This document shows, piece by piece, positions 5,801-57,229 of a stretch of DNA of 64,000 nt. Made by a program: the position numbers and the translations under genes. The first letter of the stretch is position 1, and every line of letters begins with the position of its first letter. The DNA comes from Prasinococcaceae sp. CCMP 1430 (Eukaryota > Plantae > Prasinodermophyta): the NCBI GenBank assembly GCA_013416795.1, contig RQSC01000806.1, positions 1-64,000 of the forward strand, in the 5' to 3' direction. The notes under the pieces are model-generated. The model was not told the DNA's origin. It saw only the letters and a program-made list of their open reading frames with translations, and made no database searches.

Positions 5801-6469
5801 ACCCGCCGCCAGGACAGTCAGCCCTGCAGCCGCCACAACGAGTAACCGCTCAGCCTCGGCTTGGCGCAGCGGCGCCGGCCTCAAATCTAGAGGCAACGGG
5901 CCGCTGTCGCCTCCACCCGACCGCGATCCGATGCTACGCGTTGATTCGGCGCGGCCGAGGTCGACCTCCTCGTGCGGCGGGCATGCGTTCGGCAGAGGCG
6001 TCGTCTCCGCCGGCGGCGTCTCAGCCGGCGGTTCCGACATGCACAGGTTCTCAAGCTGTTTCAGAGCGCTGTCAGGCCTCTGAGTGTCGGGCGAGGCACC
6101 CGTTGCCGGCGCCGGCGCCGGCGGCGCAGGGCGCGCTGGCTTGGGCGCAGCGGAATCACCAAACGCGACCCACCCCTCTTGGTGCCCCTGCTGCTGCGAC
6201 GGCCGCGTCTGCTCCGCCCTCTGCTGTTGCGCCGCCTGCCCCACTCCGGAGTCGATGGCGGCCGCCACGGCGGGCACGGCTCTCTCGAATCGAACAGTGC
6301 TGGGGTCGATGCTCTTGAGCCGCGCCTTCTTCTCGTCCGTGCTGAGAGACGCGTCCTCACACACCCCGCGCACGGCCGCGAGCGCTGCCTGGTTGAAGCA
6401 ACGCGCGCGCAGCATTGGCACGCCGAAATACGAGCTGATGTCGACGTCGACGAACCTTCGCTCCGCCAT
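2852..6469 (-). CDS. WD40-repeat inositol polyphosphate 5-phosphatase (plant 5PTase12/13/FRA3-like)
   Basis: Single exon. WD40-like repeats (LWSGHADGTIRAW, LWTGSTSGGMRMW) are followed by the 5-phosphatase motifs GTWNVN, VGFQEI, GNKG, HFAAH, WYGDFNYRI and PAWTDRV, plus SDHRPV. Likely start MAERRF at 6469. Confidence 0.92.
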   Translation of the reverse strand: MAERRFVDVDISSYFGVPMLRARCFNQAALAAVRGVCEDASLSTDEKKARLKSIDPSTVRFERAVPAVAAAIDSGVGQAAQQQRAEQTRPSQQQGHQEGWVAFGDSAAPKPARPAPPAPAPATGASPDTQRPDSALKQLENLCMSEPPAETPPAETTPLPNACPPHEEVDLGRAESTRSIGSRSGGGDSGPLPLDLRPAPLRQAEAERLLVVAAAGLTVLAAGGSGLPRLWRLGENWTSTGAPWTMPVPKGEKDTEPYRTFKAPDVNCPAATCMHVLGGTLWSGHADGTIRAWKPGGGASEAGIAGICTLRWRAHRSAVVSMTLTNDGTLWTGSTSGGMRMWQFGKEVPPDVKVATQSQWGSFSPHSEPMETDGSFGADLRVPISVAASASGNLHSRVRFVAQAGDVVWSGGNANLGLWDARSGRLIRRVGYDFLDEAGNVLEGATVDADDAKMAALEGSAGARSKAKGIGSAFRSMGKLARVAANKASAGVTKVVSSAADYASGPGGTSDYVTRGRGQLHCLCVAPVDGGAWAGYATGVVTHWGRSGKVLIETRLANTKVPVRAITAVGGARLWAGTADGYIHVLGAVGSQRGKPIGKWLAHDSPVISLASDGPTVVSMAADGAVRVWNARSPSPGDATARDTYAGELAAVSQEKTYRIFAGTWNVNEKQAKADDIARWLCGKGNSTGNATAAQLTLDFDVVAVGFQEIEMGGGSLVSAAAKNAVGNSKLSKDAQWWCDNMTLAVQEATRGVPLSESFELVSFRQMAGIACGVWARRRLREVVGDAQTCTVACGALGNTLGNKGAAAVRFTLHRQSLAFISSHFAAHQKNVADRNANYARIASNLDFTSDFFKSSMNFAAVASAASSRTFESADSSSSIEDSSGESGRDDEGLESDANAPVSRSESVGAMALQQSSRFADAADVIVWYGDFNYRIDLPNEEVRPAIQRGDLGVLRGHDQLMREQAAGRAFRRMREAQIEFPPTYKFDKGYGSQSYDTSEKCRIPAWTDRVLVFDHRATRNPGACTTVDVVRYEAEMDAFGSDHRPVRAELAVRMAVAEARLGRACAIKAYGACAAVLNVGGLGQPGSGKGAMIRAEADKVAVRMMGGDTTLRIANMSKQGLLFRVQGADQGAPLQSMPSWLTVEPGAGALAPGAVLVLKFSVHPDSPPPTGSRASVAIRAIGEYGMRAAPDEHETAAVVSVSVE

Positions 6470-7205
6470 GGCTGCACCACCAAGGTCCGACTGGACCGCC
6501 CCCGCCGTTCGATCCTTTCCCCCCCCCCGGCCTGGCTGCGTCCCAGGAGACGAAAAAGCTGTCTGCGGCCCGGGCGCCGCGCGCACCCCCTGCGCGCGCA
6601 CAGCCCTGCGCAGCGCCCCGCAGGCGCGCACCCCCCGCTTCCTCCCCGCCGCCCCCGCAGATATGCGCGGCGCCGCCCGCCGGCAGCAACACCTCGCTCC
6701 GCCCCGCTGGCGGACGGCCCCGCCATCAAAGCGCCTCCGCTGGAACGCAAAATCAGGGTCCACAGAAAGCGCATCAACGCATGCGATTTAATGTCATCTC
6801 CGGTCGCGAGCGCGCGATCCATCCTCCGGGACTTCGAGTATACCTCAAATGCGCGTCGGTCGGAGCGCGCGCGGGGCGGTGGGGGGGGTCTTCGCCGGTG
6901 TCGCCAATTTCCGGATTTGGATTTGGATTTGGCGCACGGCGGGTTTGTTTGGCGCTTTGTTCCTCTTATGAGCTCGCGCGGGCGTCGTTCGCGTGCGTTT
7001 GCGGGTCGGCGCGCCCATACAGTATTCCGATGCGTACGCGCTCTGATGCGGCGGCGGCGGCGCGCGCGCGCGTGGGCCGCGAATTGGCCGATTGATTGGG
7101 CGATTGCAATTGCGGATATGTGGCCCGCGGCCGCCGGGCCGCGCGTGGCGCGACGGCGCGCGGCCGCGCGGAGCAAGTGTGCGCTCGGACGAGCAGCCGG
7201 TAGCA

Positions 7206-14433: not shown

Positions 14434-15624
14434 CCAGCCGGGCGTAGCGGCACTCCGCCCACCCAACTGACCCACCCTCCACTGGGCTGTCTGGGGCGGC
14501 GCCGCGCCGCGCCGCGCCGCCCCGCGCCACTGTGGCGGGCTAACCCCGGTCCCCTGCCCCTGCCCCCTCCCTCCCTCCCTCCCTCCCTCCCTCCCCTCGG
14601 TGCCCCTGCCGCCCTGCCGCCCGCCGGCCGCGTCCGCGCGTGCGCGCGAAATTCGAATGCGTTTTGACGTCCATGCAGACGCGCATATCAAAACGCACCC
14701 GATCCGCGCTACGATACCATTGTGTCGACTTCAATTAGCCGTTGCAAGCCGTTGCACCCGCGGCCACCGCGGCCCCGCGGATCGACGGATCTCAGACCCT
14801 ATTTAGTTACACCCCAACAGGCCGTGCGAGCGCGGCAGCGAACCAACGTTCCTTGGTTCAAAATCATCCATACCCGCGGGTTTCGGTTTCGTTCGGTGCC
14901 TTCGGCACACCCGCGCGCATTCGCTGCGGTCGGCGGCGGGAATCGGAGAAAAGGGATTCCGAATCCGAATTCCGCTCCGAAGCAGCGGTTTCGGTTTCGC
15001 TCGCGCGTGCGGGCGCCGCCCCGCGCCTCCCGTCGCCGCGCGAGGGTGCGTTTTGACCTGCGCGCACGCCGCGGGATCGCCGGCGGTGCGCGCGCACACA
15101 GGCGCACCGCGAAACGCGGAAGCGCGGGAGCAATTGATTTTGATTGCGAAGCGACGCGACGCGACGGCGCGCGGGCCGGCCCGGCGCGCGACCTCGGCTC
15201 GGCCGGGGACGCCCGAAACCCGAACACGCCAGGGGCGAGGCGGGGCGAGGCGGGGCGCGTGCGCAGGACAAAACGAGACGAGAGTGAGACGTATATTGGA
15301 CCCTGATTCGGTAGTAAACCCTTATAGCGCGCGCGCGCCGCTGGCGTGCGGCGCCGCTGCTGCGCGCACGGGACAGGGGTGGGGGGAGGGGGGGAGGGGA
15401 CGGGGATGGGGGCAGGCAGGCAGGCACGCCTGATGTGCGCGTTCGCGGGCGCGCGGGCGAGCGTGTGTGTGCGCACGCGTGTGCCACACCGTGCGCAGCG
15501 CACGCGCTGGGGAGGGGCGCTAACCCTCCAGGCCGCGGCCGCGCCCCGCCGCGCGGGCTCGAAGGTGCGTACCCTCGTCGCGCGAGCCAACGCGCCGCGC
15601 GTCCGGGTGCGGCGCAACGGACGC

Positions 15625-18600
15625 ATGGCCGCCGCCGGGGCCTTCTGCTCGCGCCCTCCCGCCGCGGCAACGGCCGCGCTCGCCGAGGCCGCGCGGTCGG
15701 CCGCGGCGCTTCTTGATAGCAGCGAGGACGCCCTGTGCGCGCTGGGTGAAACGGTGGAGGCGCTCGAGCCCGGATTCAAGGGCGTCGGCCCGGTGGCTGC
15801 CGTGATCGCAGCAGGATGCAAGCTCGTGCGCGACATGGACGACTGCCTGCTTACACACAAGCTCGCGGACGCGTTCAGCGCGGCCGTGAAGATACAAACG
15901 GCCAAGTGCAGGCAGTACGTGCTCAGGCTGCTGCTGCAGAGGCTGCCCAGGCGGAACGCGCGGACGCTGCGCGCGCTGTGCTGCGCCCTTGCCGCGTGTG
16001 CACTGCAAAGGGGCTTCGGTGGCGGCGTGAGCGAGCTGCTGCAGCTGGCCGCCGGCGCCGCGCCGTTTGTACTTCCGGCAGGAGCGACGGGCGCCGGCGA
16101 TGCACCCGCCGCAGCGGCAGTGCTCGCAGCGCTGGCCGGAGAGTACGCTCACCTACTCGAAGAAGACATCGACGCGAACGCGGACGCCGGCGGAGGCCAG
16201 GGGGCGGTGACGAAGGGCCGCGTTGCCGAGCGTGCGGCGAAGATCGCCCCCGTGCTAGGCGCCACCGTCCGTCAGGCAGGGTCCAGGGGCACGAAAAAGC
16301 ACCCCCTGTCGGTCTCTGGTGGGGGTAATGTGCCACACAGCCGCAGCGCGGCGCTCGCGGCGAAAGCGGCCACTGCGGCAACACCCACGCGCACGTATAC
16401 AGGGCTTGCAGCCAGGCGTAGCGGCGTGGCTGCCCCTTCCAAACAGCAGGCGCAGGCCAAGTCATCGAACGCACGCCGTATGTCTGCAAGCACGCTGTCC
16501 TCGCAGGGTGCCGCGCGTTCAAAGGAAGCTCAGCAGCGGTCGAGGCCCGTATGGCGATCTGGTTCGACCGTGACGCCCACTACGCAGCAGCGCTCAAGCA
16601 TTCGGAGACGCACAGAGGAGCGTGTCGCCGCGAGCAAGCAGCAACGAGGAAAGAAAGCAGCGGCCGACTCGAGAGCTCGGCGCCCGCCAGAGAAGACCGC
16701 CAGCGTCGATGAAGTGGCCGATTCCGAGTCCACCGAACGCGCTGAGTCGCCGGGGCTTGATGTCAGTGCCGATGGTGACGATCGTGAGAGCATGCAGCTG
16801 GCTGCATCGTGGTCGAACGTGGCAGCGCTGCTCGAGGATGCCATGACCGAATCTAAGACGCTGGAGAGGATGGCCTCGCATGCTGGGACAGGTGGTGGCG
16901 CCGTTGAATCGTCGAAGGAGGCGCCGCCTCCGCGAGTGCAGCGCGAGCCCACGGCTGGCTGGGCAGGTGAGCGCACTCGCAAAGTGCACTTTGCTGAAGG
17001 GGCCCATGCTGTTGGCGTCACCTCTGCTGCGCCCAGTACCTACCTTGCTCCCGAATCGACAGTCAAGGCTGCGCGAGCGCAGGCCGCGCGTCTCCTGTCA
17101 AGCCCGTCGGCGGGGTACGGCAGCGTTGCATCAAGTGACCGCGAGGATGGCCGCGTGGGACCTAGCTTTCGATCTGCACCTGCCAGGACTGGGGCTGCAA
17201 AAGAAGACACTTCGCCGGCGGCGCTGCAAGCACAACAGGGGGTGGCAGATGGAGCGCTCACGAGCCCTGAATTTGCTGCGATCGAGCGTTTTGTGCCTGA
17301 AGCGCCCACGAATGCGCATATACCCGCACGCCGTCGAAGCAAGGCGCCGATTGGTGCGGAGGCGGGCGTTTCACCTTCACGTGCCCAAGGCAGTGCTAGC
17401 GCACGCCTCACGCTCACCTCTACAGTTTCCATGAGCCCAGCCGCTGCCATTGATGTGGCGACGCTCGATGCCCTGAGGTCGCAGCTGGGCGTCGATACGC
17501 TCGAGCAAGCAGCTGACTGTCGGAACGGACTGGCGTCCAGCTCAGCTGCTCCGACGCAGGCGAAGGCCGTCACGACGATTGATCAGTCGACGCTGCACTC
17601 AATGGAGGCGCTGCGCGACAATGTCGGGGCTCAGACGATCGACGAGGCGTTGGAGATGGCGAAATCCTTTGAGCTCGAGCTCGCACTGAAGCGTGCCGAA
17701 GAGCTCGAGCGCGGGGGCATGGCATCGATTGATGCATCGGCGCTCAAGACCTTGGAAGCAATGCGCAACCGACTTGGTCACGAAACGGTCCAGCAGGTCC
17801 TCGAGCACGCTCAGGCCCTTGAGGCTTCTGCGAGGCACCCAGCTGCATCGTTCGACGAGACGGCTGTCGAGGCGCTGCGAGAGAAGCTCGGATTGGCGAC
17901 GCTCGATGAGGCTATTGAGAAGGCAAAGGCCCTCGCAGACGCGTCGACTGCGAAGGGCACACGAGCTGCCAGCCCTATTGGCGGTGTAGTGCTGAAGTCA
18001 AACAAAGAGATGACAGCCGCGTTCGACACGTCGGCCTCGGCTGCTCTGCAGATGTCCCAGGCTCAAGGCCCAACCGACGCCGCTGTGGCCTCAATGGAGC
18101 TAGGCCTGAACGGTTCGACGCCCGAGGCAAAGCAGGCCATGATGGCGAGATTCTTCGACACGGCCGTCGCCGGCCCGCCAGGAACGCCATCCTTGCATCA
18201 AGGGATTGATGGAGCCGTTGTCCAGGACGCTTTCGCTGTCAATGGCGCGAGCAGCAGCGATAGCGGCAATGTCGAAAATGACGGGGGCCGCGGCGGGCTC
18301 AAGACGCCCGTGGTTGGGCCTTCTCCCACTGGTTCGGGAATTTCACTGGCAGGCCCTGCCGCTGTCGTTCGGGCCACGCCTTTGCAGTCAAGCAGTGAAA
18401 GCCCAGTCGTGGACGCAACTCGGGCTATCGCCAATGCACTGGATGCAGCGATGAGCCCTGGCGCTGACAGCCCGTCAGAAGCCTTGGCAGCAGTCTTGCC
18501 CCCCAAGACAGCGTCACTCTCGAAGTCTTCGATTCCCCCTCCGCCACAGCTACCGCAATCGCCACCGCCCGGCGCGAGCGTCGCCGCTGCACCTCCACCA

Positions 18601-20997
18601 CCACCGCCTCCACCGCCCCCTCCTGGCGCACCGCCGCCCCCCCCTGGTGGAGCAGTACGCACAAAAGGCTTGCCCCCACCTCCTCCACCGCCACCGGGGC
18701 CACCGCCACCGCCGCCTGGGGCAAAGGGCATGCCCCCACCACGTGGGAAGGGAGGTCCGCCGCCTCCACCGCCCCCTCCTGGTGCACCGCCACCCCCTCC
18801 TGGCGGAGGAGTACGCACCAAGGGAGTGCCCCCACCTCCTCCCCCGCCACCGGGGCCACCACCGCCGCCGCCTGGGGCGAAGGGCGTGCCCCCACCCCCA
18901 CCGCCTCCACCCCCACCACGGGGCAAGGGGGGTCCTCCGCCTCCACCGCCTCCGCCTGGCACCAAGTGGAACTCGGTGAAGCTCGCTGCACGCCAAGTGC
19001 CGAACGGCCCAAAGATGAAGCAGCTTCATTGGGACAAGTTGCATTCTCGCCGTGGGACTGTGTGGGAGCACACCGATATCGACAAGGCCGGCGTGGACAC
19101 GGCAAAGTTCAGCGAGCTTTTCAAGATAGCGAGCCCGGCATCATCTCGCCCGCGCTCGAAGACAGCGCTCGAGAAGAGGGCATCGTCCACGGTGCATCTC
19201 ATCGATCTCAAGCGCGCGCACAATATCAGCATTCAGCTTAGTTCCTTCCGCATGCCGTACGACAAGATCAGGGACTCCTTGTTGTCCATGGACGACAACA
19301 CGATCACGCAGGATCAGCTGACCGTGCTCATTGACGCCATCCCGACGGAGAAGGAAATCGCCCAGATCGAGAGTTTCGTGCGCTCAAAGCCGGCGGAGGC
19401 GCCCAACCTGGGCGACGTCGAGAAGTACTTCTTGGCCATCGCGCCGATCCCGCGGCTGCGGGGCCGCATAAGGAGCTTGCTATTCAAGGGCAGCTACGAC
19501 GGCAGCGTCGCTCGTATGAAGGAGCTGCTGCTGACTCTGGACAGCGCGACGGAGGCTCTGCGTAGCTCCTCTCGCTTCATCCGCGTGCTTGAGAGCGTGC
19601 TCGCGGTCGGAAACCACCTCAACAGTGGCACTCATCGTGGCGCCGCTGAGGGCTTCCGTATCACTGGGCTTCTCAAACTGCTCGACATCAAAGGCGTCGA
19701 CCGCTCAACGTCGCTGCTACATTTTGTGATTGACTCACTCGAGAGCAAGGAGAGTGGCTTCGTCAATGCTCTTGAGGCCGAGCTCAAGCCCGTGAACAAG
19801 GCCGCTGGCTTACATTTTGATTCGCTCAAGACCATCTCCAACGAGCTCACGGACGGCATGAAACAGGTGCAAAATGAGATCGCTCACGCTGTCGCGCCCA
19901 TCGATGACTCATCAAGCGTGTCTGACAGATTCCGTGACGTCGCCGTGGAATTCGCGGCCGAGGCCGAGGCCGAGGTAGATTCGCTTTCGGTGCGCTTGCG
20001 TGGCACGATGGCGGGCATTCGCTCCGTGGCCGAGTACTACGGCGAGGAGGTCAAGGAAGGGAAGAATCCCGTCATATTCAGCACTGTGCGCGACTTCTGG
20101 TTCGCTGTCAACAAGGCGCATGTCGATCTGCAGCGGCGGTGGAGGCAAGCAGCGCGCCTGAAGGAGCAGCAGGCGGCCAAGGAGGCGCTGGCGAAGAAAC
20201 AACGGGAGAGGCAGGCGGCCATCAAGGAGGCAGAGGAAATCGCAGTGCTGCGACCAGATGGCAAGGACTGCGCCGCTGCGTCTGCGGATGGCGATGGGGC
20301 TCGTGGTGCAGTAGATGGCGGCACCGAAGGAAATACTGCCCCCGATAGCAGTGGCGGGAGTGAGGTGGCGCAGCAGGCGCCAACGTCGGGGCGGCGTGAT
20401 GCGGAGCGCGCCACCGGTACCAGAGAGCGCGATGGCAGCCCCGCAGGCAGAACCCCCATCTCTCCTGTGAAACCAACGTCTCCCCTGCTAAATGCGGCCA
20501 AGCTCGACGCGCAGAAGCTGGCACGCAGTGGAGACGTCTCTTCCGCCGCGGGCGATCTCGAGACTGGCGTTCTGACCACCCCGAGCGGGAGGATCTCGCG
20601 CACGCAATCGAGGCACCGTGCCAGCACAGTTGAGCGCGAGCGCTCGATTGAGCTCGATCAGAGCCCGCTCGTTGAGTACCTAGAGACAGTCGACGACACA
20701 GTGTCCGACCCTGGTGACATCACGCGCGAGCGGGCGGGCTCCGATGCCGACGCTGACGCCGCGCTCGGCGCAGGCGCGCTGGAGATGGGCGTCGGTGAGG
20801 CCGGGATCGAGGGCGACCTCGAAGCCGCTGCTGAGTCTGCTCTGGCTGCAGCAATGGCCGACTGCTCGAGTGCCGAGGGAGCCGCGACCCCAGGTTCGTC
20901 CAAATCTGACGACGCGCGGCCGTCAGCACTCGCGTTGGCCTCGGCACGGGAGGCAGCTCAGGTTGCCATGGCGTCATCGTCGGACGACAACGAGTAG
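15625..20997 (+). CDS. Formin (N-terminal RhoGAP-like domain, FH1, FH2); class III-like
   Basis: Intronless. Poly-Pro FH1 at about 18530-18960 with a 156-bp internal duplication. FH2 motifs MKQLHWDKL, LIDLKRAHNISIQL, VLAVGNHLNSG..AEGFRITGLLKL and TSLLHFV. The N-terminus CKLVRDMDDCLLTHKL..LLQRLPRRNARTLRAL resembles the C-terminal half of a RhoGAP. Confidence 0.93.
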   Translation: MAAAGAFCSRPPAAATAALAEAARSAAALLDSSEDALCALGETVEALEPGFKGVGPVAAVIAAGCKLVRDMDDCLLTHKLADAFSAAVKIQTAKCRQYVLRLLLQRLPRRNARTLRALCCALAACALQRGFGGGVSELLQLAAGAAPFVLPAGATGAGDAPAAAAVLAALAGEYAHLLEEDIDANADAGGGQGAVTKGRVAERAAKIAPVLGATVRQAGSRGTKKHPLSVSGGGNVPHSRSAALAAKAATAATPTRTYTGLAARRSGVAAPSKQQAQAKSSNARRMSASTLSSQGAARSKEAQQRSRPVWRSGSTVTPTTQQRSSIRRRTEERVAASKQQRGKKAAADSRARRPPEKTASVDEVADSESTERAESPGLDVSADGDDRESMQLAASWSNVAALLEDAMTESKTLERMASHAGTGGGAVESSKEAPPPRVQREPTAGWAGERTRKVHFAEGAHAVGVTSAAPSTYLAPESTVKAARAQAARLLSSPSAGYGSVASSDREDGRVGPSFRSAPARTGAAKEDTSPAALQAQQGVADGALTSPEFAAIERFVPEAPTNAHIPARRRSKAPIGAEAGVSPSRAQGSASARLTLTSTVSMSPAAAIDVATLDALRSQLGVDTLEQAADCRNGLASSSAAPTQAKAVTTIDQSTLHSMEALRDNVGAQTIDEALEMAKSFELELALKRAEELERGGMASIDASALKTLEAMRNRLGHETVQQVLEHAQALEASARHPAASFDETAVEALREKLGLATLDEAIEKAKALADASTAKGTRAASPIGGVVLKSNKEMTAAFDTSASAALQMSQAQGPTDAAVASMELGLNGSTPEAKQAMMARFFDTAVAGPPGTPSLHQGIDGAVVQDAFAVNGASSSDSGNVENDGGRGGLKTPVVGPSPTGSGISLAGPAAVVRATPLQSSSESPVVDATRAIANALDAAMSPGADSPSEALAAVLPPKTASLSKSSIPPPPQLPQSPPPGASVAAAPPPPPPPPPPPGAPPPPPGGAVRTKGLPPPPPPPPGPPPPPPGAKGMPPPRGKGGPPPPPPPPGAPPPPPGGGVRTKGVPPPPPPPPGPPPPPPGAKGVPPPPPPPPPPRGKGGPPPPPPPPGTKWNSVKLAARQVPNGPKMKQLHWDKLHSRRGTVWEHTDIDKAGVDTAKFSELFKIASPASSRPRSKTALEKRASSTVHLIDLKRAHNISIQLSSFRMPYDKIRDSLLSMDDNTITQDQLTVLIDAIPTEKEIAQIESFVRSKPAEAPNLGDVEKYFLAIAPIPRLRGRIRSLLFKGSYDGSVARMKELLLTLDSATEALRSSSRFIRVLESVLAVGNHLNSGTHRGAAEGFRITGLLKLLDIKGVDRSTSLLHFVIDSLESKESGFVNALEAELKPVNKAAGLHFDSLKTISNELTDGMKQVQNEIAHAVAPIDDSSSVSDRFRDVAVEFAAEAEAEVDSLSVRLRGTMAGIRSVAEYYGEEVKEGKNPVIFSTVRDFWFAVNKAHVDLQRRWRQAARLKEQQAAKEALAKKQRERQAAIKEAEEIAVLRPDGKDCAAASADGDGARGAVDGGTEGNTAPDSSGGSEVAQQAPTSGRRDAERATGTRERDGSPAGRTPISPVKPTSPLLNAAKLDAQKLARSGDVSSAAGDLETGVLTTPSGRISRTQSRHRASTVERERSIELDQSPLVEYLETVDDTVSDPGDITRERAGSDADADAALGAGALEMGVGEAGIEGDLEAAAESALAAAMADCSSAEGAATPGSSKSDDARPSALALASAREAAQVAMASSSDDNE

Positions 20998-30355: not shown

Positions 30356-33300
30356 TCACGTCAAGGACGACCTCTTGCCAAAGACGAAGACGCTCGCTCG
30401 CCTGCGCCAGCCACCGCTGTCGCCGCCGTCTCCAGCGTCTCGGATCGAGCGGCTGCTGCTTTCGCCGGTCTTCTTGAAGAGCGAGGGCGCGGTAGTCACA
30501 CTTATGCGCCGCACGGCGGCATTGAGCACGCCGTGGCCCTCTTCGTGCCGCGCGTCGCGCGGCCCCAGGAGGACGTCGGGTGAGTACTTTTCAAGGAACC
30601 TCTCGAGTCCCTTGAGCACCTTCCCGCGCTCGGCGGCGCGCTCGACAGCGTCGAGGGTGCTTTGCTTGAGCAGCTCGTCGATGCGATCGTTGCTGAGCTC
30701 GCGGCGGTTGGCGCACAGCGTGGCGAGCGTCGCCTGCAGCTCGGGGAAGATGAGCACCATCGTCTTGTACAGCGGAGCCACGATGACGTCGATGAAGGCG
30801 ATCTGCGATTGCGGGATCGACGTCCTGTCGCGATCCATCTGCGGCGACACCTTGAGCCCTCGGGCCTTCTCCCGGTCGCCCTGCTGCCAGAACTCCTCCA
30901 GCACGCGCATCTTCCACTTCTTGTAGATGTGCATGGGCCTGACCGGGTTGGAGATGTCCGCCGCGTGTAGGATGGTGCTGAAGATGAGCTCTCGCTCCTC
31001 GGGCGTCTCGAATATGCACTCCGCATCCGACTGGCCCGCGAGCTGGGTCGCGCGCTGCACCCTCTCCGTGTTGAGCTCGTACCACACCTCGAGCTGCGAG
31101 AGAGACTTGAAGTGGTTCACCATGTCCGTGTGCAGGATGGTGTGAATTATCAGCTTGCGCGCCTCGCGCCACTCGGCGTCGTCCAGCTTGGCGAAGACGT
31201 CCGCGTCGGGGTGGTCGGCGACCAGCTGGTAGAGCATGCTGACGTGATGGTTCTCCAGCACCGAGCTGTCGTTGTACTTGATGGCCTTCGAGTCGCGCGT
31301 ACGCACCAAGAAGTTGTTGTTGATGCCCGGATGGTTGAGGTCGTGCGCGAGCGCCGCGACGAGCAGCGAGAACTTCTCCAGCGGCGAGGGCATTATCTTG
31401 TCCTCGGTGAGCGACACGTATCGGTACACGGCGTGTGTGACGTCGCACACGTGTCGCCAGTTGTGGTACGGCGTCTCGCCGTAGTGTTGTTGCATGAGCG
31501 CTATGAAGGCGGCCAGCGTGTCGCGGTGAACCATCTCATCTATCAGATCAAACGCGTCGAACATTGCCATGACGTGCTCCGCGCACTCCTCGTCGGTGGG
31601 CAACCCCTCCATGTCGCACGCCCACGAGTCCAGGCTGGTGGAAAGCGAGACAACGGAGCGCGCCTCCCCTCGGCCCGCAGCGCCGTCGCGGAAGGCTTGT
31701 GTGGTCGCAACTACTTGGGCCTTGCTCACCTCACCGTCCCGCGTCGCGGGCGCGTCGCCGCCGCCGTTGCCCACCGCCTGGCCGAGCCCACGATTGGGGG
31801 AGGGCAGGTCGATGCTCCCGCCGCGGCGACGGCGGGGAGAGCTTGAATGCGCGGCTGCAGCGCTGTCGCCCGAATACTGCTTGATGAAGTCGCGCGTGTT
31901 GTCGTCCATGTCGGTGTCGTCGAGCATGGTCTTGATCATGTGATCGCCCTGCTGCCCGGTGCCGCTCACATGTTTGACGAGCTTGGTCATCTTTCCCACG
32001 ACGGCCTCCATGTCACGCATCTCCATGCCCTCGTGCCCCAGCGCCAGCGAGTTCATCACCTGCGCGGCGTTCATCTGGATCGAGCGGAAGATGCGCTCGA
32101 TGGGCCGCACCACCAGCCGCGTCGACGTCGCGTTGAGCATGAACGAGAAGGCCAGCAGCAGCAGGATGACGAACACCACCAGGAGGATGTTCCACATGCC
32201 CTCCTCGGCTTGCGTGGCGGACACGTCGAAGCGCATGGACACGCACGGGGCGAGCGCGCGGTACTCCTTCCCTCGAGCCGCCGCGGCGGCGGCTCGGGCG
32301 CCCGCCGCCGCGGCGGCCTCCGATCGCGCCGCGGGGCACTCGTTTCTGCCGTCGACCGCCATGATCGCGTTGGCCGCCGGCTCGCTGCGTCCGAAGTACT
32401 CCTCGCCCCAGACCTCATCGCCGACGCGCAGGTAGAAGGGCTTCTGCTGCATCCCGCACCCCGAGCAGCGGTACGACTCGTCGTAGGCGTACGCGAGGCC
32501 CGCCACCGCGCCCGGCGGCAGCGCGCCGGTGTGCTCCGCCTCGGAGAGCCCTAGGAAGTTTCGCCTGAAGACGTCCACCAGCGGCTGCAGCGACGCGCGG
32601 TCCACCGCCCCGGCCTCGGCCACCTGCGGGAGCGCGATCGCCTCCAAGGAGTTCACGTAGGCCAAGGCCGTGGTGTCCACCACCTCGCTCGCGAGGAACA
32701 TGGGCACGAAGACCGACAGCAACACGAGCGTGGCCACCTGCCGGCTGATGTTCTCGCTGAGCGCCTTGGCGATGTTGGAGGGCGCGTCCCTGCCCGACAT
32801 CTCCGCCTTGACGTCCGCCTCGCCCTTGAGCACGCGCGAGATGCGGAAGAACTTGAGCACGCGCACCACGCGCACGAGGCGCATGAGGCGCCCCGCGCGG
32901 CCGCCGATGCGCGCCGCGCGCGTGGCGCGCAGCACCGTCGCCTGGCCGCCGCTCTCCACCCCGAACGCCTCGTAGATGGGCTCCGACATCCAGCGTATGT
33001 CCATGATGATGCTCAGCGTGCCCACGAAGTCCATCCAGAAGTAAAAGCTCAGGAAGTACTTGCGCTCGATGAGCGTGATCCCCGCGAGCTCGAGCGAGAA
33101 CCAGACGAACACCGCGAAGAGGCTCCACTCGACGCCGTCGACGGACGCGGGCGGCGCCTCGGCCACGAGGAGCGCGTCGCTCGCGAACAGCGCGAACACC
33201 AGCGCCGCGCTGCTCAGCGCGTTGAGGCGCCGGCCGCGCGCCAGCGCGCGCAGCCGGTCCTGCCAGCGCCAGTCCCAGCGGTACGCGAACGGCCCGATCC

Positions 33301-33637
33301 GCGTGTACGGCGGCAGCTCCTCGAGCTCCTCGAGCTCTGGGTCGTCGTCGTGCACGAGCGCGTCCGAGTCGCCAACCGCCGCCGCCGCGGCGTCCACCTC
33401 GCCGCCCGTCGCCTCGGCATTGCGCGTGATTTTGAGCGCGCGTGCGTGGGCGTGGGCGTGGGCGTGCGCGTGTGCGTGTGCGTGTGCGTGTGCGTGTGCG
33501 TGTGTTTGGGCGTGTGTGCCCCCGATGGCGCCCGCCTCTAACGTCGCAGCTTGGGCCGATCCGCTACCGGCCTCACCCGCCACGGCGGCGCTGGCGTCGA
33601 CGAGGACGGACGTCACGCGCGCGCTCGCGCGCGGCAT
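30356..33637 (-). CDS. Class I 3',5'-cyclic nucleotide phosphodiesterase with N-terminal ion-transport/voltage-sensor-like transmembrane domain
   Basis: PDEase_I motifs are intact: YHNWRHVCDV, AHDLNHPGINN, VLENHH, LHTDM, HAADISNP, EFWQQGDRE and QIAFI. The N-terminus has several TM helices and the S4-like LRATRAARIGGRAGRLMRLVRVVRVLKFFR. The first ~100 aa are uncertain. Confidence 0.92.
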   Translation of the reverse strand: MPRASARVTSVLVDASAAVAGEAGSGSAQAATLEAGAIGGTHAQTHAHAHAHAHAHAHAHAHAHARALKITRNAEATGGEVDAAAAAVGDSDALVHDDDPELEELEELPPYTRIGPFAYRWDWRWQDRLRALARGRRLNALSSAALVFALFASDALLVAEAPPASVDGVEWSLFAVFVWFSLELAGITLIERKYFLSFYFWMDFVGTLSIIMDIRWMSEPIYEAFGVESGGQATVLRATRAARIGGRAGRLMRLVRVVRVLKFFRISRVLKGEADVKAEMSGRDAPSNIAKALSENISRQVATLVLLSVFVPMFLASEVVDTTALAYVNSLEAIALPQVAEAGAVDRASLQPLVDVFRRNFLGLSEAEHTGALPPGAVAGLAYAYDESYRCSGCGMQQKPFYLRVGDEVWGEEYFGRSEPAANAIMAVDGRNECPAARSEAAAAAGARAAAAAARGKEYRALAPCVSMRFDVSATQAEEGMWNILLVVFVILLLLAFSFMLNATSTRLVVRPIERIFRSIQMNAAQVMNSLALGHEGMEMRDMEAVVGKMTKLVKHVSGTGQQGDHMIKTMLDDTDMDDNTRDFIKQYSGDSAAAAHSSSPRRRRGGSIDLPSPNRGLGQAVGNGGGDAPATRDGEVSKAQVVATTQAFRDGAAGRGEARSVVSLSTSLDSWACDMEGLPTDEECAEHVMAMFDAFDLIDEMVHRDTLAAFIALMQQHYGETPYHNWRHVCDVTHAVYRYVSLTEDKIMPSPLEKFSLLVAALAHDLNHPGINNNFLVRTRDSKAIKYNDSSVLENHHVSMLYQLVADHPDADVFAKLDDAEWREARKLIIHTILHTDMVNHFKSLSQLEVWYELNTERVQRATQLAGQSDAECIFETPEERELIFSTILHAADISNPVRPMHIYKKWKMRVLEEFWQQGDREKARGLKVSPQMDRDRTSIPQSQIAFIDVIVAPLYKTMVLIFPELQATLATLCANRRELSNDRIDELLKQSTLDAVERAAERGKVLKGLERFLEKYSPDVLLGPRDARHEEGHGVLNAAVRRISVTTAPSLFKKTGESSSRSIRDAGDGGDSGGWRRRASVFVFGKRSSLT

Positions 33638-33802: not shown

Positions 33803-33837
<35 letters not shown>

Positions 33838-34086
33838 CTTGCAGACGCACGGGCATGCGAGGCACGGCGCCGCGCGGCGCGGACGAAGCCCAGCCGCTAA
33901 GACAGCCCGCGCCCGAGCGTGTGTGCGGGGAACGCACGCCGGGCGAAGCAGGTGTGTGCGTGCGCGCGCGTGTGTGTGTGTGTGTGCGCGCGCGCGTGTG
34001 TGTGCGTGTGTGTGTGTGTAAGTGTGTGTGTGTGCGCGTGCGTGTGTGTGTGTGTGTGCGTGCGTGTGTGTGTGTGTGCGTGCGCG
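33803..34086. repeat. Compound microsatellite: (AC)n block followed by (GT/GC)n block
   Basis: (AC)n at about 33803-33838 and (GT)n-rich tract at about 33950-34086, in inverted orientation. Confidence 0.85.
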
Positions 34087-34162
34087 TGCGGCGCGCGAAG
34101 GGGCACGCCCCGCGCGCGCGCGCGCGTCCCTTCGCCGCTCCCTACGACCCTTGCTCAAACCC

Positions 34163-34349
34163 CACGTGGGTTGAGGTTCTTATCGGGCGCTTTTAGGTTG
34201 TATTCACGGCGCTAAAAGGGTCTAAATTATACGTCAAATCGCAAGGCGGCGGCGCGCGCGCGCGCACGTGGGTTGAGGTTCTGATCTGGCGCTTTTGAGG
34301 TTTATTCACGTCGCTAAAAGGGTCTAAAATATCATTCAAAGCGAAGGCG
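34163..34349. repeat. Tandemly duplicated ~85-bp promoter-like module (102-bp period) carrying a CACGTG G-box
   Basis: CACGTGGGTTGAGGTTCT..GGCGCTTTT..AGGTT..TATTCACG..CGCTAAAAGGGTCTAAA..CAAA..GC.AAGGCG at 34163 and 34265. Confidence 0.8.
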
Positions 34350-34692: not shown

Positions 34693-34797
34693 CTTGACCT
34701 CGACGACGGCGCCCTCCACAGGGCTCTTGGCCTCGTGTGTCACCTTGTCGGTCTCGATGGTTACAACTGGCTCGTCGACGAAGACGTGGTCGCCCGG
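34693..34797 (-). CDS. Lipoyl-domain exon fragment (2-oxoacid dehydrogenase E2-like), truncated at the N
   Basis: Translates PGDHVFVDEPVVTIETDKVTHEAKSPVEGAVVEVK, with the lipoyl-Lys motif ETDK, and ends at an AAG|GTGCGG donor. It is absent from the ORF track. Confidence 0.8.
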
Positions 34798-34798
34798 N

Positions 34799-36482
34799 CG
34801 CCGCCGTGGCGGCCCCCGCGGCGCAGCGGCGCGCGCGCGGGACGCGCAACAAGGAGCTCGGGCTGGCCGACCTCGCCGCCAACTACCACGTGCCCATCAA
34901 CGAGGCCGCGCGGAACCTCGGCGTGTGCGTCACCGTGCTCAAGCAGGTGTGCCGCGAGCTGGGCGTCCAGCGCTGGCCCTACAGGAAGGTCAAGAAGATC
35001 GACGACATGGTGAGGATCATCGGCGGCGAGGTCGACGCCGACATGCCAAAGGACCTGCGCGATCGCATCGACAGGGTGCAGGAGGCGCGCGACTGCATCC
35101 TCAGCAACCCCAACTCGACGGCGCACAAGCGGCTCGGCAAGGTCAAGTCCTTCCGCGCGGCCAAGCAGGCGTCCCTCAAGGAGAGCCGAAAGCGCGCCGA
35201 GGCCGCCGCCGCGGTGGTCGCGGCCGCCGGCGCCGTCGACGGGGTCCACGACGCGACCGCCGACGCGCTGGGCAGCGGGCTGGGCGTGGTGGTCAAGAAG
35301 GAGGAGGGCGCGAACGGCGCGTACGAGGCCGTGGCGACCTGCGGCCCGGCCGGCGTCATCGCGGACGGCTCGGCGTTCACCGCCATCGCCGACGGCGCGG
35401 CGGCGGCGCCCGCGGGCGTCGCTCGCGCGTGGGGCGCGACGACCGTGGCGTCGCTGCCGCAGTCGGAGATCGACGAGATCGTCACGCAGGCGCTGGACGC
35501 CGTGCACGCCATGTTCCCGAACAACTCGAACGCGTCGGTGATCATCGCCGCCGCCGCGTCCGCCTCGGCGTCCGCCATGGCCACCGCGGAGACCATCAAG
35601 CAGATGCCCGAGCTGGGCGCGGTCGTCTCCACCGAGCACCTCGCAAAGGCCGCGCGGACCGCCGCGTGCACCGCCGCGTCGGCCGTCGGCAAGGCCGCCC
35701 TCGACGCGCCCGGCGGCTGGATCGCGCCCGCCCTGGTCGGCGCGTCGCAGGGCGGCGTGAGCGCGCCCGGCGGCTTCCCCGCCGCCATGGGCGCTGCGGC
35801 GAGCGCGCCGTACGCCATCGCGCCCAACGGCGTGCTGGGCAGCGTGGGCGTTGTGGGCGGGATGTCGACCGCCCTGCCCTACGGCGCCGGGACGGGCGCG
35901 CTGCACGCCGCCGCGCAGGTGCAGGCGCAGGCCGCGCAGCTCGTGCACGCGCAGGCGGCCGTGCAGGCGCAGGCCAGCGCAGGGGGAGGGGTGAGCGCAT
36001 CGCTGGGACCCCTCAACGTGCCCGTGTCCGCCTCGGACGGCGGCGCGGGGGAGGGCGCCGCGGTCGTGGCCTCTCCGCGCGCGGCTGTGGCGCCGGCGCA
36101 GCAGCTGGCGGGCGCGCAGGTAGGCGCGGGCGTCGGCTCGTCACAGGTGGGGTTGGCGCAGGCGCCAATGGCCTCCGCGAGCGGCGGCGTGGGCGTGTCC
36201 CTCTCGGCGATGGCGGCGGGGCCGGCGCCGGTGGCGCACGCGCCGATGCTCCAGCCCCCGCAGCCCCCGCCACCGCCCGCGGCGAACGGCGCCGCCAACG
36301 GCGCGAGCGCCAGCGCCGGCTCGCCGACCGTCGCGCCGACGCAGCCGCAGGTACAGGTGGCCGCCTACGGAGGCTGGCAGGCGCCCGCGGTGTCGACGCA
36401 GGTGGCCTCGCAGCCGCAGCACGCGCGGCCGGCGCAGGCGCACGTGTTCGCGGCCTCGCAGGCCCTCTACGGAGCCACGTAG
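34799..36482 (+). CDS. RWP-RK transcription factor (RKD-type), 5' end lost at the N
   Basis: LADLAANYHVPINEAARNLGVCVTVLKQVCRELGVQRWPYRKVKK is followed by an RKD-like helix (ARDCILSNPN) and an Ala/Gly/Gln/Pro-rich tail; no PB1 domain is visible. Confidence 0.9.
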
Positions 36483-41333: not shown

Positions 41334-41863
41334 NNNNNNNNNNNNNNNNNNNNNNNNNNNNNNNNNNNNNNNNNNNNNNNNNNNNNNNNNNNNNNNNNNN
41401 NNNNNNNNNNNNNNNNNNNNNNNNNNNNNNNNNNNNNNNNNNNNNNNNNNNNNNNNNNNNNNNNNNNNNNNNNNNNNNNNNNNNNNNNNNNNNNNNNNNN
41501 NNNNNNNNNNNNNNNNNNNNNNNNNNNNNNNNNNNNNNNNNNNNNNNNNNNNNNNNNNNNNNNNNNNNNNNNNNNNNNNNNNNNNNNNNNNNNNNNNNNN
41601 NNNNNNNNNNNNNNNNNNNNNNNNNNNNNNNNNNNNNNNNNNNNNNNNNNNNNNNNNNNNNNNNNNNNNNNNNNNNNNNNNNNNNNNNNNNNNNNNNNNN
41701 NNNNNNNNNNNNNNNNNNNNNNNNNNNNNNNNNNNNNNNNNNNNNNNNNNNNNNNNNNNNNNNNNNNNNNNNNNNNNNNNNNNNNNNNNNNNNNNNNNNN
41801 NNNNNNNNNNNNNNNNNNNNNNNNNNNNNNNNNNNNNNNNNNNNNNNNNNNNNNNNNNNNNNN
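41334..41863. other. Assembly gap (N run)
   Basis: 530 Ns. Confidence 1.
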
Positions 41864-48484: not shown

Positions 48485-50065
48485 CTATGAGCGGCGGCAT
48501 TCCCTCAGGTCCGCCAAGCACGAACCCGTCAGGTTCAGAGTAAGGTCATAGGAGTACCGCAGCCTGTCCGTGCGCTCAAAGGCGAAGTCGAACTTCGCCA
48601 GCATGCGCGCCACGACCAACACCGTCTCGGTGACTCCCAGCCGCGTGCCCAGGCATCCGCGCGGACCCGCACCGAAGGGTAGCCACGCGAAGGGGTGACG
48701 CTCGGTCGCGGCCGCCTCGTCGAGGAAGCGCTCAGGGCGGAAGGAGTCGGGGTCGGAGCCCCACTGGCGCTCGTCGCGGCCGAGGAAGTACGGGGACCAG
48801 CAAGCGACGGAGCCCTCCTCTGTCGCATAGCCGGCGAGTGTCTCGTCGCGCACGCTGCGTCGGCCAATGAATGGCACCGGCGGGTAGAGCCGCAGTACTT
48901 CCTTGCAAGCAGCTGCGACGTACGGCAGTTCCCCAAGCACCGTATCGAGCTGTAATTCATCCAAGCTAGGCACGGCTCGTACCTCTTCGAGTGCCCTCTC
49001 GAGCGCGCGCTCGTTGCCCTGCGCGTGCAGCAAGAACAGCGTGGCGGTGATGGTGCTTGCTGTCGTGTCCGATCCCGCGATCACCAAATCGAAGAGGACG
49101 TACAGGATTTGCTCATCTGGAACCTCTTGATCAAGAAGAACTCCCAGCAGGTCGGCGCGGCCGCTGCTGCCGCCATCCGTGCCGCTCGCGCGCTGCTTTC
49201 TTCGGTCTTCGATGATCTCGAGCACGAGTGCGCGCAGTCGCTCCAGCAGGCCGCCCTCACCCGCCACGCGCGAGTAATTTGAGCTCAGTGCAGGCGACAG
49301 CCGCCACAGCGGTGGGACCTCGTTGGCAGTGGCCACGATGCTCTCGAGGTAGCCCGCGATGACCTCAGAGAGCTCTGCTCGTCTGGACTGATCGACGGAG
49401 TCTGACGCGCCGAAGGTGACGGCGAGGACAACGTCGAGCGTCAGGCGACGTGCCTCCGCGTAAACGTCCTGGCGGCGGGCGACGCCCCCACCCTCCCTCA
49501 CACGCCCCGCGAGCCGCGCCTCAGCCTCTGCCGCCTCCGCCTGAATCGCTACCACGAAGGCGTTCATGCTGACTGGGCTTTCGAACGAGGGCACGCATGC
49601 CACCTTGTTGGCGCGGTGCGCGGCACCCTGCGCGTACACTATGCCACGGTCGAGCCCTAGCGTCGTGAAAAGCTCCACGGAGTATCGCTCGGGGAACGCG
49701 TCCGCCTTTGACACGACGGCCTCGCGCACGCTTTCGGGCGAGAGCAGGAAAACGTAGTCGCCGAAGGGTCCCAACGAGATCCTCGCGACGCCACGCTCGC
49801 CGTAGCCCTCGCGCGCGAGGATGCGCATCACCTGCGCACGCGCGCGAGAGAGAAGGGCGGTCAGATGCATTGGCGGGGAAAGACGCGCTCGGCGTGGGCG
49901 GGCGCGCGGGCGCGCGTCGCTGGTGACGCAGCGGCGACGCCGCACCTCCCACGGCGCGCCACCCCGCGCGAACGCGTAGAGCGTGTCCAGCGCCGAGGGC
50001 GCGGGCAGGGCGGGCGCATCGGTCGCGCACGCGCGCGCCGCGGCCGGCCGCGCGCGCGCCGCCAT
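48485..50065 (-). CDS. Cytochrome P450, probably organelle-targeted
   Basis: Exons 50065-49946 and 49831-48485. I-helix AGSDTT, K-helix KEVLR, PERF and heme motif FGAGPRGCLG. Confidence 0.93.
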   Translation of the reverse strand: MAARARPAAARACATDAPALPAPSALDTLYAFARGGAPWEVRRRRCVTSDARPRARPRRARLSPPMHLTALLSRARAQVMRILAREGYGERGVARISLGPFGDYVFLLSPESVREAVVSKADAFPERYSVELFTTLGLDRGIVYAQGAAHRANKVACVPSFESPVSMNAFVVAIQAEAAEAEARLAGRVREGGGVARRQDVYAEARRLTLDVVLAVTFGASDSVDQSRRAELSEVIAGYLESIVATANEVPPLWRLSPALSSNYSRVAGEGGLLERLRALVLEIIEDRRKQRASGTDGGSSGRADLLGVLLDQEVPDEQILYVLFDLVIAGSDTTASTITATLFLLHAQGNERALERALEEVRAVPSLDELQLDTVLGELPYVAAACKEVLRLYPPVPFIGRRSVRDETLAGYATEEGSVACWSPYFLGRDERQWGSDPDSFRPERFLDEAAATERHPFAWLPFGAGPRGCLGTRLGVTETVLVVARMLAKFDFAFERTDRLRYSYDLTLNLTGSCLADLRECRRS

Positions 50066-50563
50066 ACGCCTCAGGAGGGGCGAGGAGGGCAGGAGAGGGG
50101 CGCGGAGGAGAGGGGCGCGGAGGAGAGGGAGGGAGGGAGGGAAGGGGACAGAGGGACCGCGCCGCCGCCGCCGCGCGCTGTGCCCCGCCGCGCAACGCAC
50201 GACGCCTTATCCAACCCGCCGCCGCGACTCCATGTTAAGGTTTCGTGACTCCCATGTTTAAGGTATACAAACACTACAGGGTTAACTCTTCGAATCATTC
50301 ATGTGCTCGCGTGACGGAAAAATGCAAGGGGCAATCGATCGCCCGGTGGCGTTTTTGAATTCACAATTCATTTTGACCTCCATATCAGAAAGCATTCGAT
50401 TTCCGCAACTTTGACGCTTGCTGTGTGCAGGGGGAAAAAAACGGGGGGCGAGCCGCGAGGCGCCACAGGGAGAGGCGGGGGCGCCCGCCTGCCCGCCTGC
50501 CCGCCTGCCCGCCTGCCGGCGCCGAGCGACGCCTGCGCGGGCGCGTTGACAGCGGAGGCGCCG

Positions 50564-56923: not shown

Positions 56924-57229
56924 NNNNNNNNNNNNNNNNNNNNNNNNNNNNNNNNNNNNNNNNNNNNNNNNNNNNNNNNNNNNNNNNNNNNNNNNNNNNN
57001 NNNNNNNNNNNNNNNNNNNNNNNNNNNNNNNNNNNNNNNNNNNNNNNNNNNNNNNNNNNNNNNNNNNNNNNNNNNNNNNNNNNNNNNNNNNNNNNNNNNN
57101 NNNNNNNNNNNNNNNNNNNNNNNNNNNNNNNNNNNNNNNNNNNNNNNNNNNNNNNNNNNNNNNNNNNNNNNNNNNNNNNNNNNNNNNNNNNNNNNNNNNN
57201 NNNNNNNNNNNNNNNNNNNNNNNNNNNNN
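56924..57229. other. Assembly gap (N run)
   Basis: 306 Ns. Confidence 1.

Follow-up and report, generated by a model that had tools for sequence, protein, structure and literature searches.

A voltage-sensor membrane module fused to a class I phosphodiesterase in Prasinococcaceae sp. CCMP 1430: a candidate voltage-controlled cAMP phosphodiesterase

Few protein classes are known to couple an S4 sensor to an output other than a pore; they comprise the voltage-sensing phosphatases (VSPs), Hv1, sNHE and uncharacterised protozoan cyclases. We analysed a stretch of 64,000 nucleotides from Prasinococcaceae sp. CCMP 1430 (contig RQSC01000806.1 of assembly GCA_013416795.1, positions 1 to 64,000; hereafter the window), in which a single gene on the minus strand joins a voltage-sensor domain (VSD) and further transmembrane (TM) helices to a class I cyclic-nucleotide phosphodiesterase (PDE). 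Fusions known as ACalpha, or "ion channel/adenylyl cyclase" proteins, are attributed by later papers to Paramecium, Tetrahymena, Plasmodium and Toxoplasma (Weber et al. 2004, cited in PMC3283738, PMC10651576 and PMC12414865). This family has been described as carrying a VSD and a GXG motif after the sixth TM helix (TM6), without definitive recombinant characterisation (PMC3283738, PMC10651576), and hyperpolarisation affects how Paramecium forms cAMP (PMC12414865, PMC10651576). In Toxoplasma gondii, an Ion_trans domain together with a PDE has been noted in TgPDE4 and TgPDE16, whose function is uncharacterised (PMC8809380, PMC7720076). Of RasGEFW from Dictyostelium the literature says no more than that it "has a transmembrane domain" and localises to the plasma membrane (PMC11696275).

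No PDE appears among the VSD proteins covered by a review from 2023. In our literature searches, the phrases "voltage-sensing", "voltage-gated" and "voltage-dependent phosphodiesterase" did not occur, and "voltage-sensing domain" was never paired with "PDE domain". An earlier interpretation of the window, made from its letters alone (the sequence-only reading), had known of no characterised voltage-regulated PDE, and our searches likewise found none. The combination of Ion_trans and PDE is itself already known from Toxoplasma, and the gene described here belongs to a large family that is visible in databases but functionally uncharacterised.

The fusion gene occupies positions 30356..33637 of the minus strand. 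Taken from the list of open reading frames (ORFs), it encodes 1093 amino acids plus a stop codon, begins with an ATG and contains zero internal stops. All strings quoted by the sequence-only reading lie inside it, namely FYFWMDFVGTLSIIMDI at residues 198-214, LVVRPIERIF at 508-517, MEAVVGKMTKLV at 543-554 and GDHMI at 564-568. The start given in that reading, 33300, drops about 112 low-complexity N-terminal residues; ahead of the conserved part, the only ATG that lies in frame is the one at position 33637. The surroundings of the gene have a GC content of about 67% and are eukaryotic nuclear DNA.

An environmental contig carries a 1093-aa gene that is 97.5% identical to the fusion gene and has the same neighbour. 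Between the two copies, codon differences numbered 9 synonymous and 1 non-synonymous in the VSD plus the fifth TM helix (TM5), 6 and 0 in the loop, and 9 and 1 in the PDE part, as against 9 and 19 in the N-terminal low-complexity tail and 2 and 5 in the linker at residues 586-685. These counts point to purifying selection on both halves of the ORF and to a poorly constrained N-terminal tail. Five short contigs from seawater metatranscriptomes (151-200 nt, 97-100% identical) align at window positions 31749-32816, corresponding to residues ~274-630; none of the five crosses the junction between the membrane module and the PDE, and none falls within the PDE part. No splice joints in the fusion gene were seen among the metatranscriptome contigs, and the listed RNA "joints" were all traced to GC-rich and (CA)n repeats upstream of it. 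Microsatellites of the (CA)n, (GT)n and (GC)n types occur at window positions 33432-33516 and 33803-34265, within and just upstream of the 5' end of the gene. Within the coding sequence, the (His-Ala)n run is not the same in the window as in the near-identical environmental copy, and read assemblies break at these 5' microsatellites.

We derived the domain layout from hydropathy and two AlphaFold2 (AF2) models. As delimited by the translation and the codon differences, a low-complexity tail containing the (His-Ala)n run (residues 1-124, 33266..33637, minus strand), predicted to be cytoplasmic, precedes the VSD. The VSD itself comprises S1-S4 at residues 136-271 (32825..33232, minus strand), delimited by the Ion_trans match, family conservation, the AF2 model and superposition on Ci-VSP. 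Its helices are S1 at 136-160 (with D154), S2 at 170-193 (F180, E183), S3 at 196-216 (D203, S209, D213) and S4 at 234-271. The S4-like helix recognised by the sequence-only reading indeed carries 12 Arg or Lys residues, at positions 237, 240, 243, 247, 250, 253, 256, 259, 262, 265, 268 and 271, spaced three residues apart except for a single step of four.

These features are strongly conserved. Across an alignment of 122 homologous modules (A1), E183 is kept in 120 members, D203 in 118 and F180 in 114; Y194, D213 and S209 (S3) and D154 (S1) are conserved as well. The basic residues at 237, 240, 243, 247, 250, 253, 256 and 259 are also conserved, so that 8-9 S4 charges are kept in the homologues. 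The pattern of F-x-x-E in S2, Asp in S3 and a basic S4 is near-invariant throughout, which is more than would be expected by chance. We take F180, E183 and D203 to be the equivalents of F233, E236 and D259 in the charge-transfer centre of Kv1.2.

The profile and structural comparisons agree with this pattern. Ion_trans matches the window protein with 19.1-21.6 bits (E 8e-4 to 1.4e-4); the 19.1-bit match covers residues 170-270 and profile positions 36-115 of 241, the 21.6-bit match profile positions 35-115. When the VSD segments of 119 family members were isolated and scanned against Pfam, 70 matched Ion_trans at E<=0.01, with a best E of 5.3e-11, and no other Pfam family recurred among the 119 segments. 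Four relatives (P0015, P0021, P0063 and P0088) exceed Pfam's own Ion_trans threshold, with matches confined to profile positions ~6-115, the S1-S4 half. The AF2 model of the isolated VSD (predicted local distance difference test, pLDDT, 80) superposes best on the Ci-VSP VSD, with Z 13.3 and a root-mean-square deviation of 2.4 Å over 127 of 136 residues (VIA-align), and reaches Z 11-12.7 on the sensors of CatSper, Nav, Cav, NavAb and Kv channels. S1-S3 are modelled with pLDDT >90. In Foldseek searches of the Protein Data Bank (PDB) with the module and with the isolated VSD, the top matches were all structures of voltage-gated ion channels or VSPs, among them a complete top 50 at E 0.04-1.3, although with weak E values (0.04-2) throughout. 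Searching PDB sequences with the module profile reached no better than E 0.45, to NavMs; because sequence similarity to solved VSDs is too weak, we relied on structure and Pfam.

Together, the Ion_trans profile, the AF2 fold and the S2/S3/S4 motifs establish that S1-S4 is a real VSD homologue, as the sequence-only reading had suspected. The pair of profiles expected from that reading was found in part: PDEase_I is matched at E 6.7e-79, whereas Ion_trans stays below threshold in the window protein and passes it only in the four relatives named above. From the retention of the charges, we infer that S1-S4 senses voltage.

The C-terminal half contains a class I PDE catalytic domain at residues 686-985 (30683..31582, minus strand), delimited by its PDEase_I and PDE4D matches and its motifs. 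The PDEase_I match (PF00233) covers residues 724-972 and profile positions 1-236 of 238, and is thus full-length, in agreement with the intact class I PDE domain that had been proposed earlier. The best solved relative is PDE4D (E 2.7e-53, ~40% identity), with PDE4A and PDE4B near it (E ~1e-53). All catalytic motifs (HNWRH, HDLNHPG, HTD, HAAD and SQ) are intact, and H725, H729, H765, D766, H769, D838, D894 and Q945 are present, with no or almost no variation among 62 family members. From these residues the domain is predicted to be catalytically intact. Conservation of the catalytic residues goes together with that of the VSD residues in these 62 proteins, all of the PDE type. N897, Y905 and Q945 align with residues of PDE4D that, in PDE4D2 numbering, are N321, Y329 and Q369, which set cAMP specificity. 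The PDE is thus probably cAMP-preferring and PDE4-like. It is preceded by a low-complexity linker at residues 586-685 (31583..31882, minus strand), which is variable in the 62-member alignment, is marked out by its codon differences and is probably disordered, and is followed by a partly helical or charged tail at residues 986-1093 (30359..30682, minus strand; from the translation) without a domain match in the Pfam scan.

Between the VSD and the PDE lie two further TM helices enclosing a predicted extracellular domain. After a charged, cytoplasmic S4-TM5 linker of ~25 aa, TM5 spans residues 297-320 (32678..32749, minus strand), based on hydropathy and an AF2 helix at model residues 160-191. 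The predicted ectodomain, a small alpha/beta fold of ~160 aa at residues 321-480 (32198..32677, minus strand), was delimited by AF2 secondary structure, Cys positions and the family consensus. It contains four Cys residues (391, 394, 434 and 465) and R417, which is nearly invariant in the family. It is nonetheless the least conserved and most length-variable part of the module, causing alignment A1 to grow to 1284 columns, whereas most of the conserved A1 positions fall in S2-S4 and in TM6 with the juxtamembrane segment. TM6 spans residues 481-503 (32129..32197, minus strand) with a hydropathy peak of 2.95, and the AF2 model shows TM6 and the juxtamembrane segment as one continuous helix of ~60 residues. 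From the positive-inside distribution of charges, we infer that the N-terminus and the PDE are cytoplasmic and that the Cys-containing domain is outside.

The pore half of an ion channel was not found. The S5-P-S6 half of Ion_trans was matched by no member checked, all matches ending at about position 115 of 241. Neither the family consensus nor the AF2 model shows a P-helix or selectivity-filter motif in the TM5-TM6 loop, where the variable 160-aa domain stands instead. As judged from sequence, the module lacks the pore half and is not a plain S1-S6 channel.

The segment following TM6 links the PDE-type proteins to cyclases. The juxtamembrane transducer, a conserved two-helix segment at residues 504-585 (31883..32128, minus strand), was delimited by column statistics and the PF26726 region, and contains LVVRPIERIF, E539, E544, K549 and G-T-G-Q-Q-G at 559-564, followed by D-x-x-T-x-x-[WF]-[LI]. 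Based on the column statistics, the region from TM6 to about residue 568 is common to PDE-type and cyclase-type members, with P512 invariant and E514, R515, E539, E544 and K549 conserved. After TM6 the cyclase-type members have G-F-G-E-A-G without exception, reminiscent of the GXG described for ACalpha, and then pass directly into the cyclase domain. In the PDE-type members this is a weaker G-x-G-x-Q-G (GTGQQG in the window protein), of which GTG at 559-561 aligns with the invariant GFG and G561 is kept in 26 of 55. A match to Guanylate_cyc was not found in the window protein, which has the PDE domain in its place. Similarly, Pfam HAMP (PF00672) did not match after the last TM helix at E<=1, and "HAMP-like" is applicable to this segment only by its position and its P-[IL]-E-R motif.

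Searches with the module extended this kinship. The cyclase-type relative P0003 matches it at E 7e-8, and an apicomplexan cluster in the ESM Atlas that combines PF26726, Guanylate_cyc and Ion_trans matches it at TM 0.59. Among clusters of the AlphaFold Database (AFDB), the module matched a ciliate cyclase (Ichthyophthirius, E 3.5e-7), a Tetrahymena "cation channel family protein" (E 2.4e-5), a Phaeodactylum cyclase and an RGS-domain protein. Precomputed PF26726 matches are on record for the window protein and its relatives in the transducer region, and Atlas clusters with PF26726 alone align to model residues 234-459. The resemblance of the N-terminal layout and linker to ACalpha-type cyclases, claimed by the sequence-only reading, is therefore upheld through cyclase-type homologues and through apicomplexan and ciliate structural matches.

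To place the gene in its family, we ran an exhaustive HMMER search with residues 125-600, which returned 1674 cluster representatives at E<=1e-3, of which 646 also pass E<=1e-10, from green algae, stramenopiles, dinoflagellates and others. Word-index protein searches with the N-terminal region and with the 62-member alignment gave almost only self matches, their candidates being filled by low-complexity words, and the relatives were obtained from the HMMER module search and a PDE-region search. Out of 212 proteins classified, ~85 combine the VSD, TM6/juxtamembrane segment and PDE, ~35 carry the same module with a class III cyclase, and 3 have the order PDE, module, cyclase. The survey across algae that had been suggested for this architecture thus located PDE-type members in green algae (Pyramimonas, Cymbomonas, Pycnococcus and Pseudoscourfieldia), stramenopiles (Triparma and Chattonella) and dinoflagellates (Polykrikos and Gymnodinium), and an ESM Atlas PDE cluster matching the module is commonest in Perkinsozoa. 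NCBI annotates the PDE-type members simply as PDEs. Transcript-derived orthologues with the same architecture come from Chattonella, MMETSP, Polykrikos, Gymnodinium and Pyramimonas, indicating that single-mRNA fusions exist in other organisms. On a module tree with 99 labelled tips, the PDE and cyclase labels change only 2 times, compared with a mean of 20 in shuffles; the PDE fusion is therefore old and stable.

Several relatives depart from this layout. P0063 (706 aa, NCBI/JGI) has four TM helices, a cytoplasmic linker of ~230 aa and a PDE, with no TM5, ectodomain or TM6; its Ion_trans match reaches 35 bits over profile positions 6-115, and its layout is Ci-VSP-like. Because phmmer found no similarity between P0063 and the window module, it is probably an independent VSD-PDE fusion. 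Three environmental proteins, P0048, P0064 and P0146 (1099-1405 aa), have the order GAF, PDE, VSD/TM module and class III cyclase, so that a single chain, built around the same sensor module, would both make and degrade cyclic nucleotides. Other partners of the TM module are a RasGEF and an RGS domain (AFDB/Swiss-Prot matches Q55GH9, which is Dictyostelium GefW, and X6LL87), and in the PDE-type P0126 from Polykrikos it is preceded by ankyrin repeats. Judging from these partners, the module behaves as a general-purpose sensor cassette.

On balance, we lean towards reading the window protein as one integral-membrane, non-conducting, probably dimeric and voltage-controlled cAMP-PDE. It would work as a dimer and not as a tetrameric pore, and the membrane potential would move the highly charged S4 through the conserved Phe/Glu/Asp charge-transfer centre. 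The S4-TM5 linker, and then TM5 paired with TM6, may carry this movement on to the juxtamembrane helices continuous with TM6, which would alter the activity of the cytoplasmic PDE by orientation or autoinhibition. Of the possible modes of control, the long flexible linker suggests autoinhibition or dimer geometry and not a rigid helix. The cell would in this way convert its electrical state into cAMP degradation, and with the same module driving ACalpha-type class III cyclases in paralogues, synthesis and degradation could form a matched pair. The wider claim, which we hold with a little less conviction than an even balance would give, is that this is a true voltage-gated PDE, ancient and widespread in protists, which would add another class of voltage-sensing enzyme to the lipid phosphatases of the VSP type and the unproven ACalpha cyclases.

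Several points weigh against such a voltage-controlled PDE. The Ion_trans scores of the window protein are under the Pfam gathering score of 25, and S4 is modelled with lower confidence (pLDDT 57-75). RNA from the source organism consists of the five short metatranscriptome contigs, with zero spanning the junction, and DNA carry-over is possible. The "transducer" analogy draws on weak structural matches to TM-HAMP kinases, without a Pfam HAMP match, and the linker of ~100 aa between transducer and PDE argues against the rigid helical coupling expected in cyclase-type members. In addition, the ectodomain could be the real input. If so, the protein would be a receptor-type PDE in which TM6 and the juxtamembrane helices relay ligand binding by the TM5-TM6 ectodomain, much like bacterial kinases of the TM-sensor-TM-HAMP type, leaving S1-S4 mainly as a structural or membrane-targeting scaffold or as a mere modulator. 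The second half of the module, with its order of TM helix, alpha/beta ectodomain, TM helix and further helices, does give weak structural matches to BarA, PrrB, NarQ and HAMP/sCache histidine-kinase clusters, and four Cys residues with a nearly invariant Arg would suit a binding domain. However, this ectodomain is the part that varies most in sequence and length, whereas the VSD is the most conserved and keeps both its 8-9 S4 charges and its charge-transfer triad. VSD-like domains that stopped sensing voltage, such as those of CNG and TRP channels, usually lose their S4 charges, which counts against a receptor, and we regard this alternative as unlikely.

A bifunctional channel and PDE, in which four subunits form a TM5/TM6 pore or ions cross the VSD and the PDE is tied to ion flux, would follow a proposal made for the Paramecium cyclase/K+ channel, but seems to us distinctly improbable. 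A tetramer would be hard to reconcile with PDE and class III cyclase domains, whose working form is the dimer. The six TM helices would be expected of a channel, and the GTG at 559-561 recalls the GXG described for ACalpha-type proteins (PMC3283738); moreover, a K+ conductance is reported for the purified Paramecium cyclase, and the Toxoplasma authors read the TgPDE domain as "resembling cation channels" (PMC7720076). Nevertheless, the S5-P-S6 half of Ion_trans is unmatched in every member checked, the 160-aa variable domain stands where a P-helix and filter should be, and the G-x-G is cytoplasmic and weakly kept in PDE-type members. It is scarcely credible, finally, that the long ORF is a gene-model artefact joining a TM protein gene to a PDE gene, or a pseudogene. 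The lack of a junction-spanning RNA contig from the source organism and the low-complexity linker at 586-685 would be compatible with such an artefact, yet no stop interrupts 3.3 kb of reading frame in a genome of 67% GC, an independent environmental contig yields the identical gene call with synonymous-biased divergence in both halves, and more than 80 homologues, several of them from assembled transcripts, share the same domain order.

Among the neighbouring genes, the divergently oriented ORF at 34737-36482 (plus strand, 581 aa) encodes an RWP-RK DNA-binding domain (E 1.9e-21) and has a single N at 34798 in its 5' part; another single N lies at window position 762. Three large single-ORF genes were found at 15346-20997 (plus strand), 2852-6763 (minus strand) and 48485-50200 (minus strand). 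They comprise a formin (FH2, E 3e-81) with a weak RhoGAP-like N-terminal match, a protein combining a beta-propeller with an inositol-5-phosphatase, and a cytochrome P450. Long intron-free ORFs appear typical of the source genome. Dips in GC content at 40-42 kb and 56-58 kb were rejected as real features, being due to N runs at 41334-41863 and 56924-57229, which are assembly gaps.

If the window protein is indeed a voltage-controlled PDE, it would represent a new output for voltage sensing. Together with cyclase paralogues on the same sensor, it would place cAMP under direct push-pull control by membrane voltage, with no need of Ca2+ or G proteins, and would offer a testable explanation of the link between membrane potential and cAMP in excitable protists and algae. 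Apicomplexan PDEs and cyclases, both drug-target families, have TM domains that still lack an explanation, and voltage sensing would give these a possible role. In practical terms, such a protein could serve as a compact, genetically encodable tool to lower cAMP by voltage, and with 1674 module clusters, dozens of them with a PDE, many orthologues are at hand for expression.

Compared with known systems, the catalytic half is closest to mammalian PDE4, with which it shares the metal-binding residues and the Gln, Asn and Tyr residues of purine recognition. Mammalian PDE4 enzymes, in contrast, are soluble or peripherally anchored, are controlled by UCR1/UCR2 and phosphorylation, and have no TM sensor. 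TgPDE4 and TgPDE16, which we liken to the window protein by their domain description, are known from a domain match only, which was taken to hint at cation transport and not at voltage sensing. The membrane half finds its top AlphaFold/Swiss-Prot match in RasGEFW, with GefW residues 275-603 aligning to model residues 2-416 at E 1.3e-7, which explains why the window protein carries the precomputed PF26726 label "Helical_RasGEFs". The effector is a RasGEF in that protein and a PDE in this one, and by analogy with RasGEFW carrying the same module, the window protein is likely to reside in the plasma membrane.

Ci-VSP resembles the window protein in placing an S1-S4 voltage sensor on a cytoplasmic enzyme with no pore, and provides the best structural match of the VSD. 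It differs in being a monomer with four TM helices, a short linker and a PTEN-like phosphatase, whereas the window protein adds TM5, the ectodomain, TM6, the helical transducer and a PDE, and its S4 carries roughly double the number of charges. The ACalpha-type proteins, compared here through cyclase-type relatives and structure, share the N-terminal six-TM module with its S4-type sensor, a conserved juxtamembrane stretch, in which the G-x-G is only weakly kept among PDE-type members, and a C-terminal cytoplasmic cyclic-nucleotide enzyme. Unlike in these proteins, the output in the window protein is a class I PDE instead of a class III cyclase, and a long flexible linker separates the transducer from the enzyme, whereas the two are contiguous in the cyclases.

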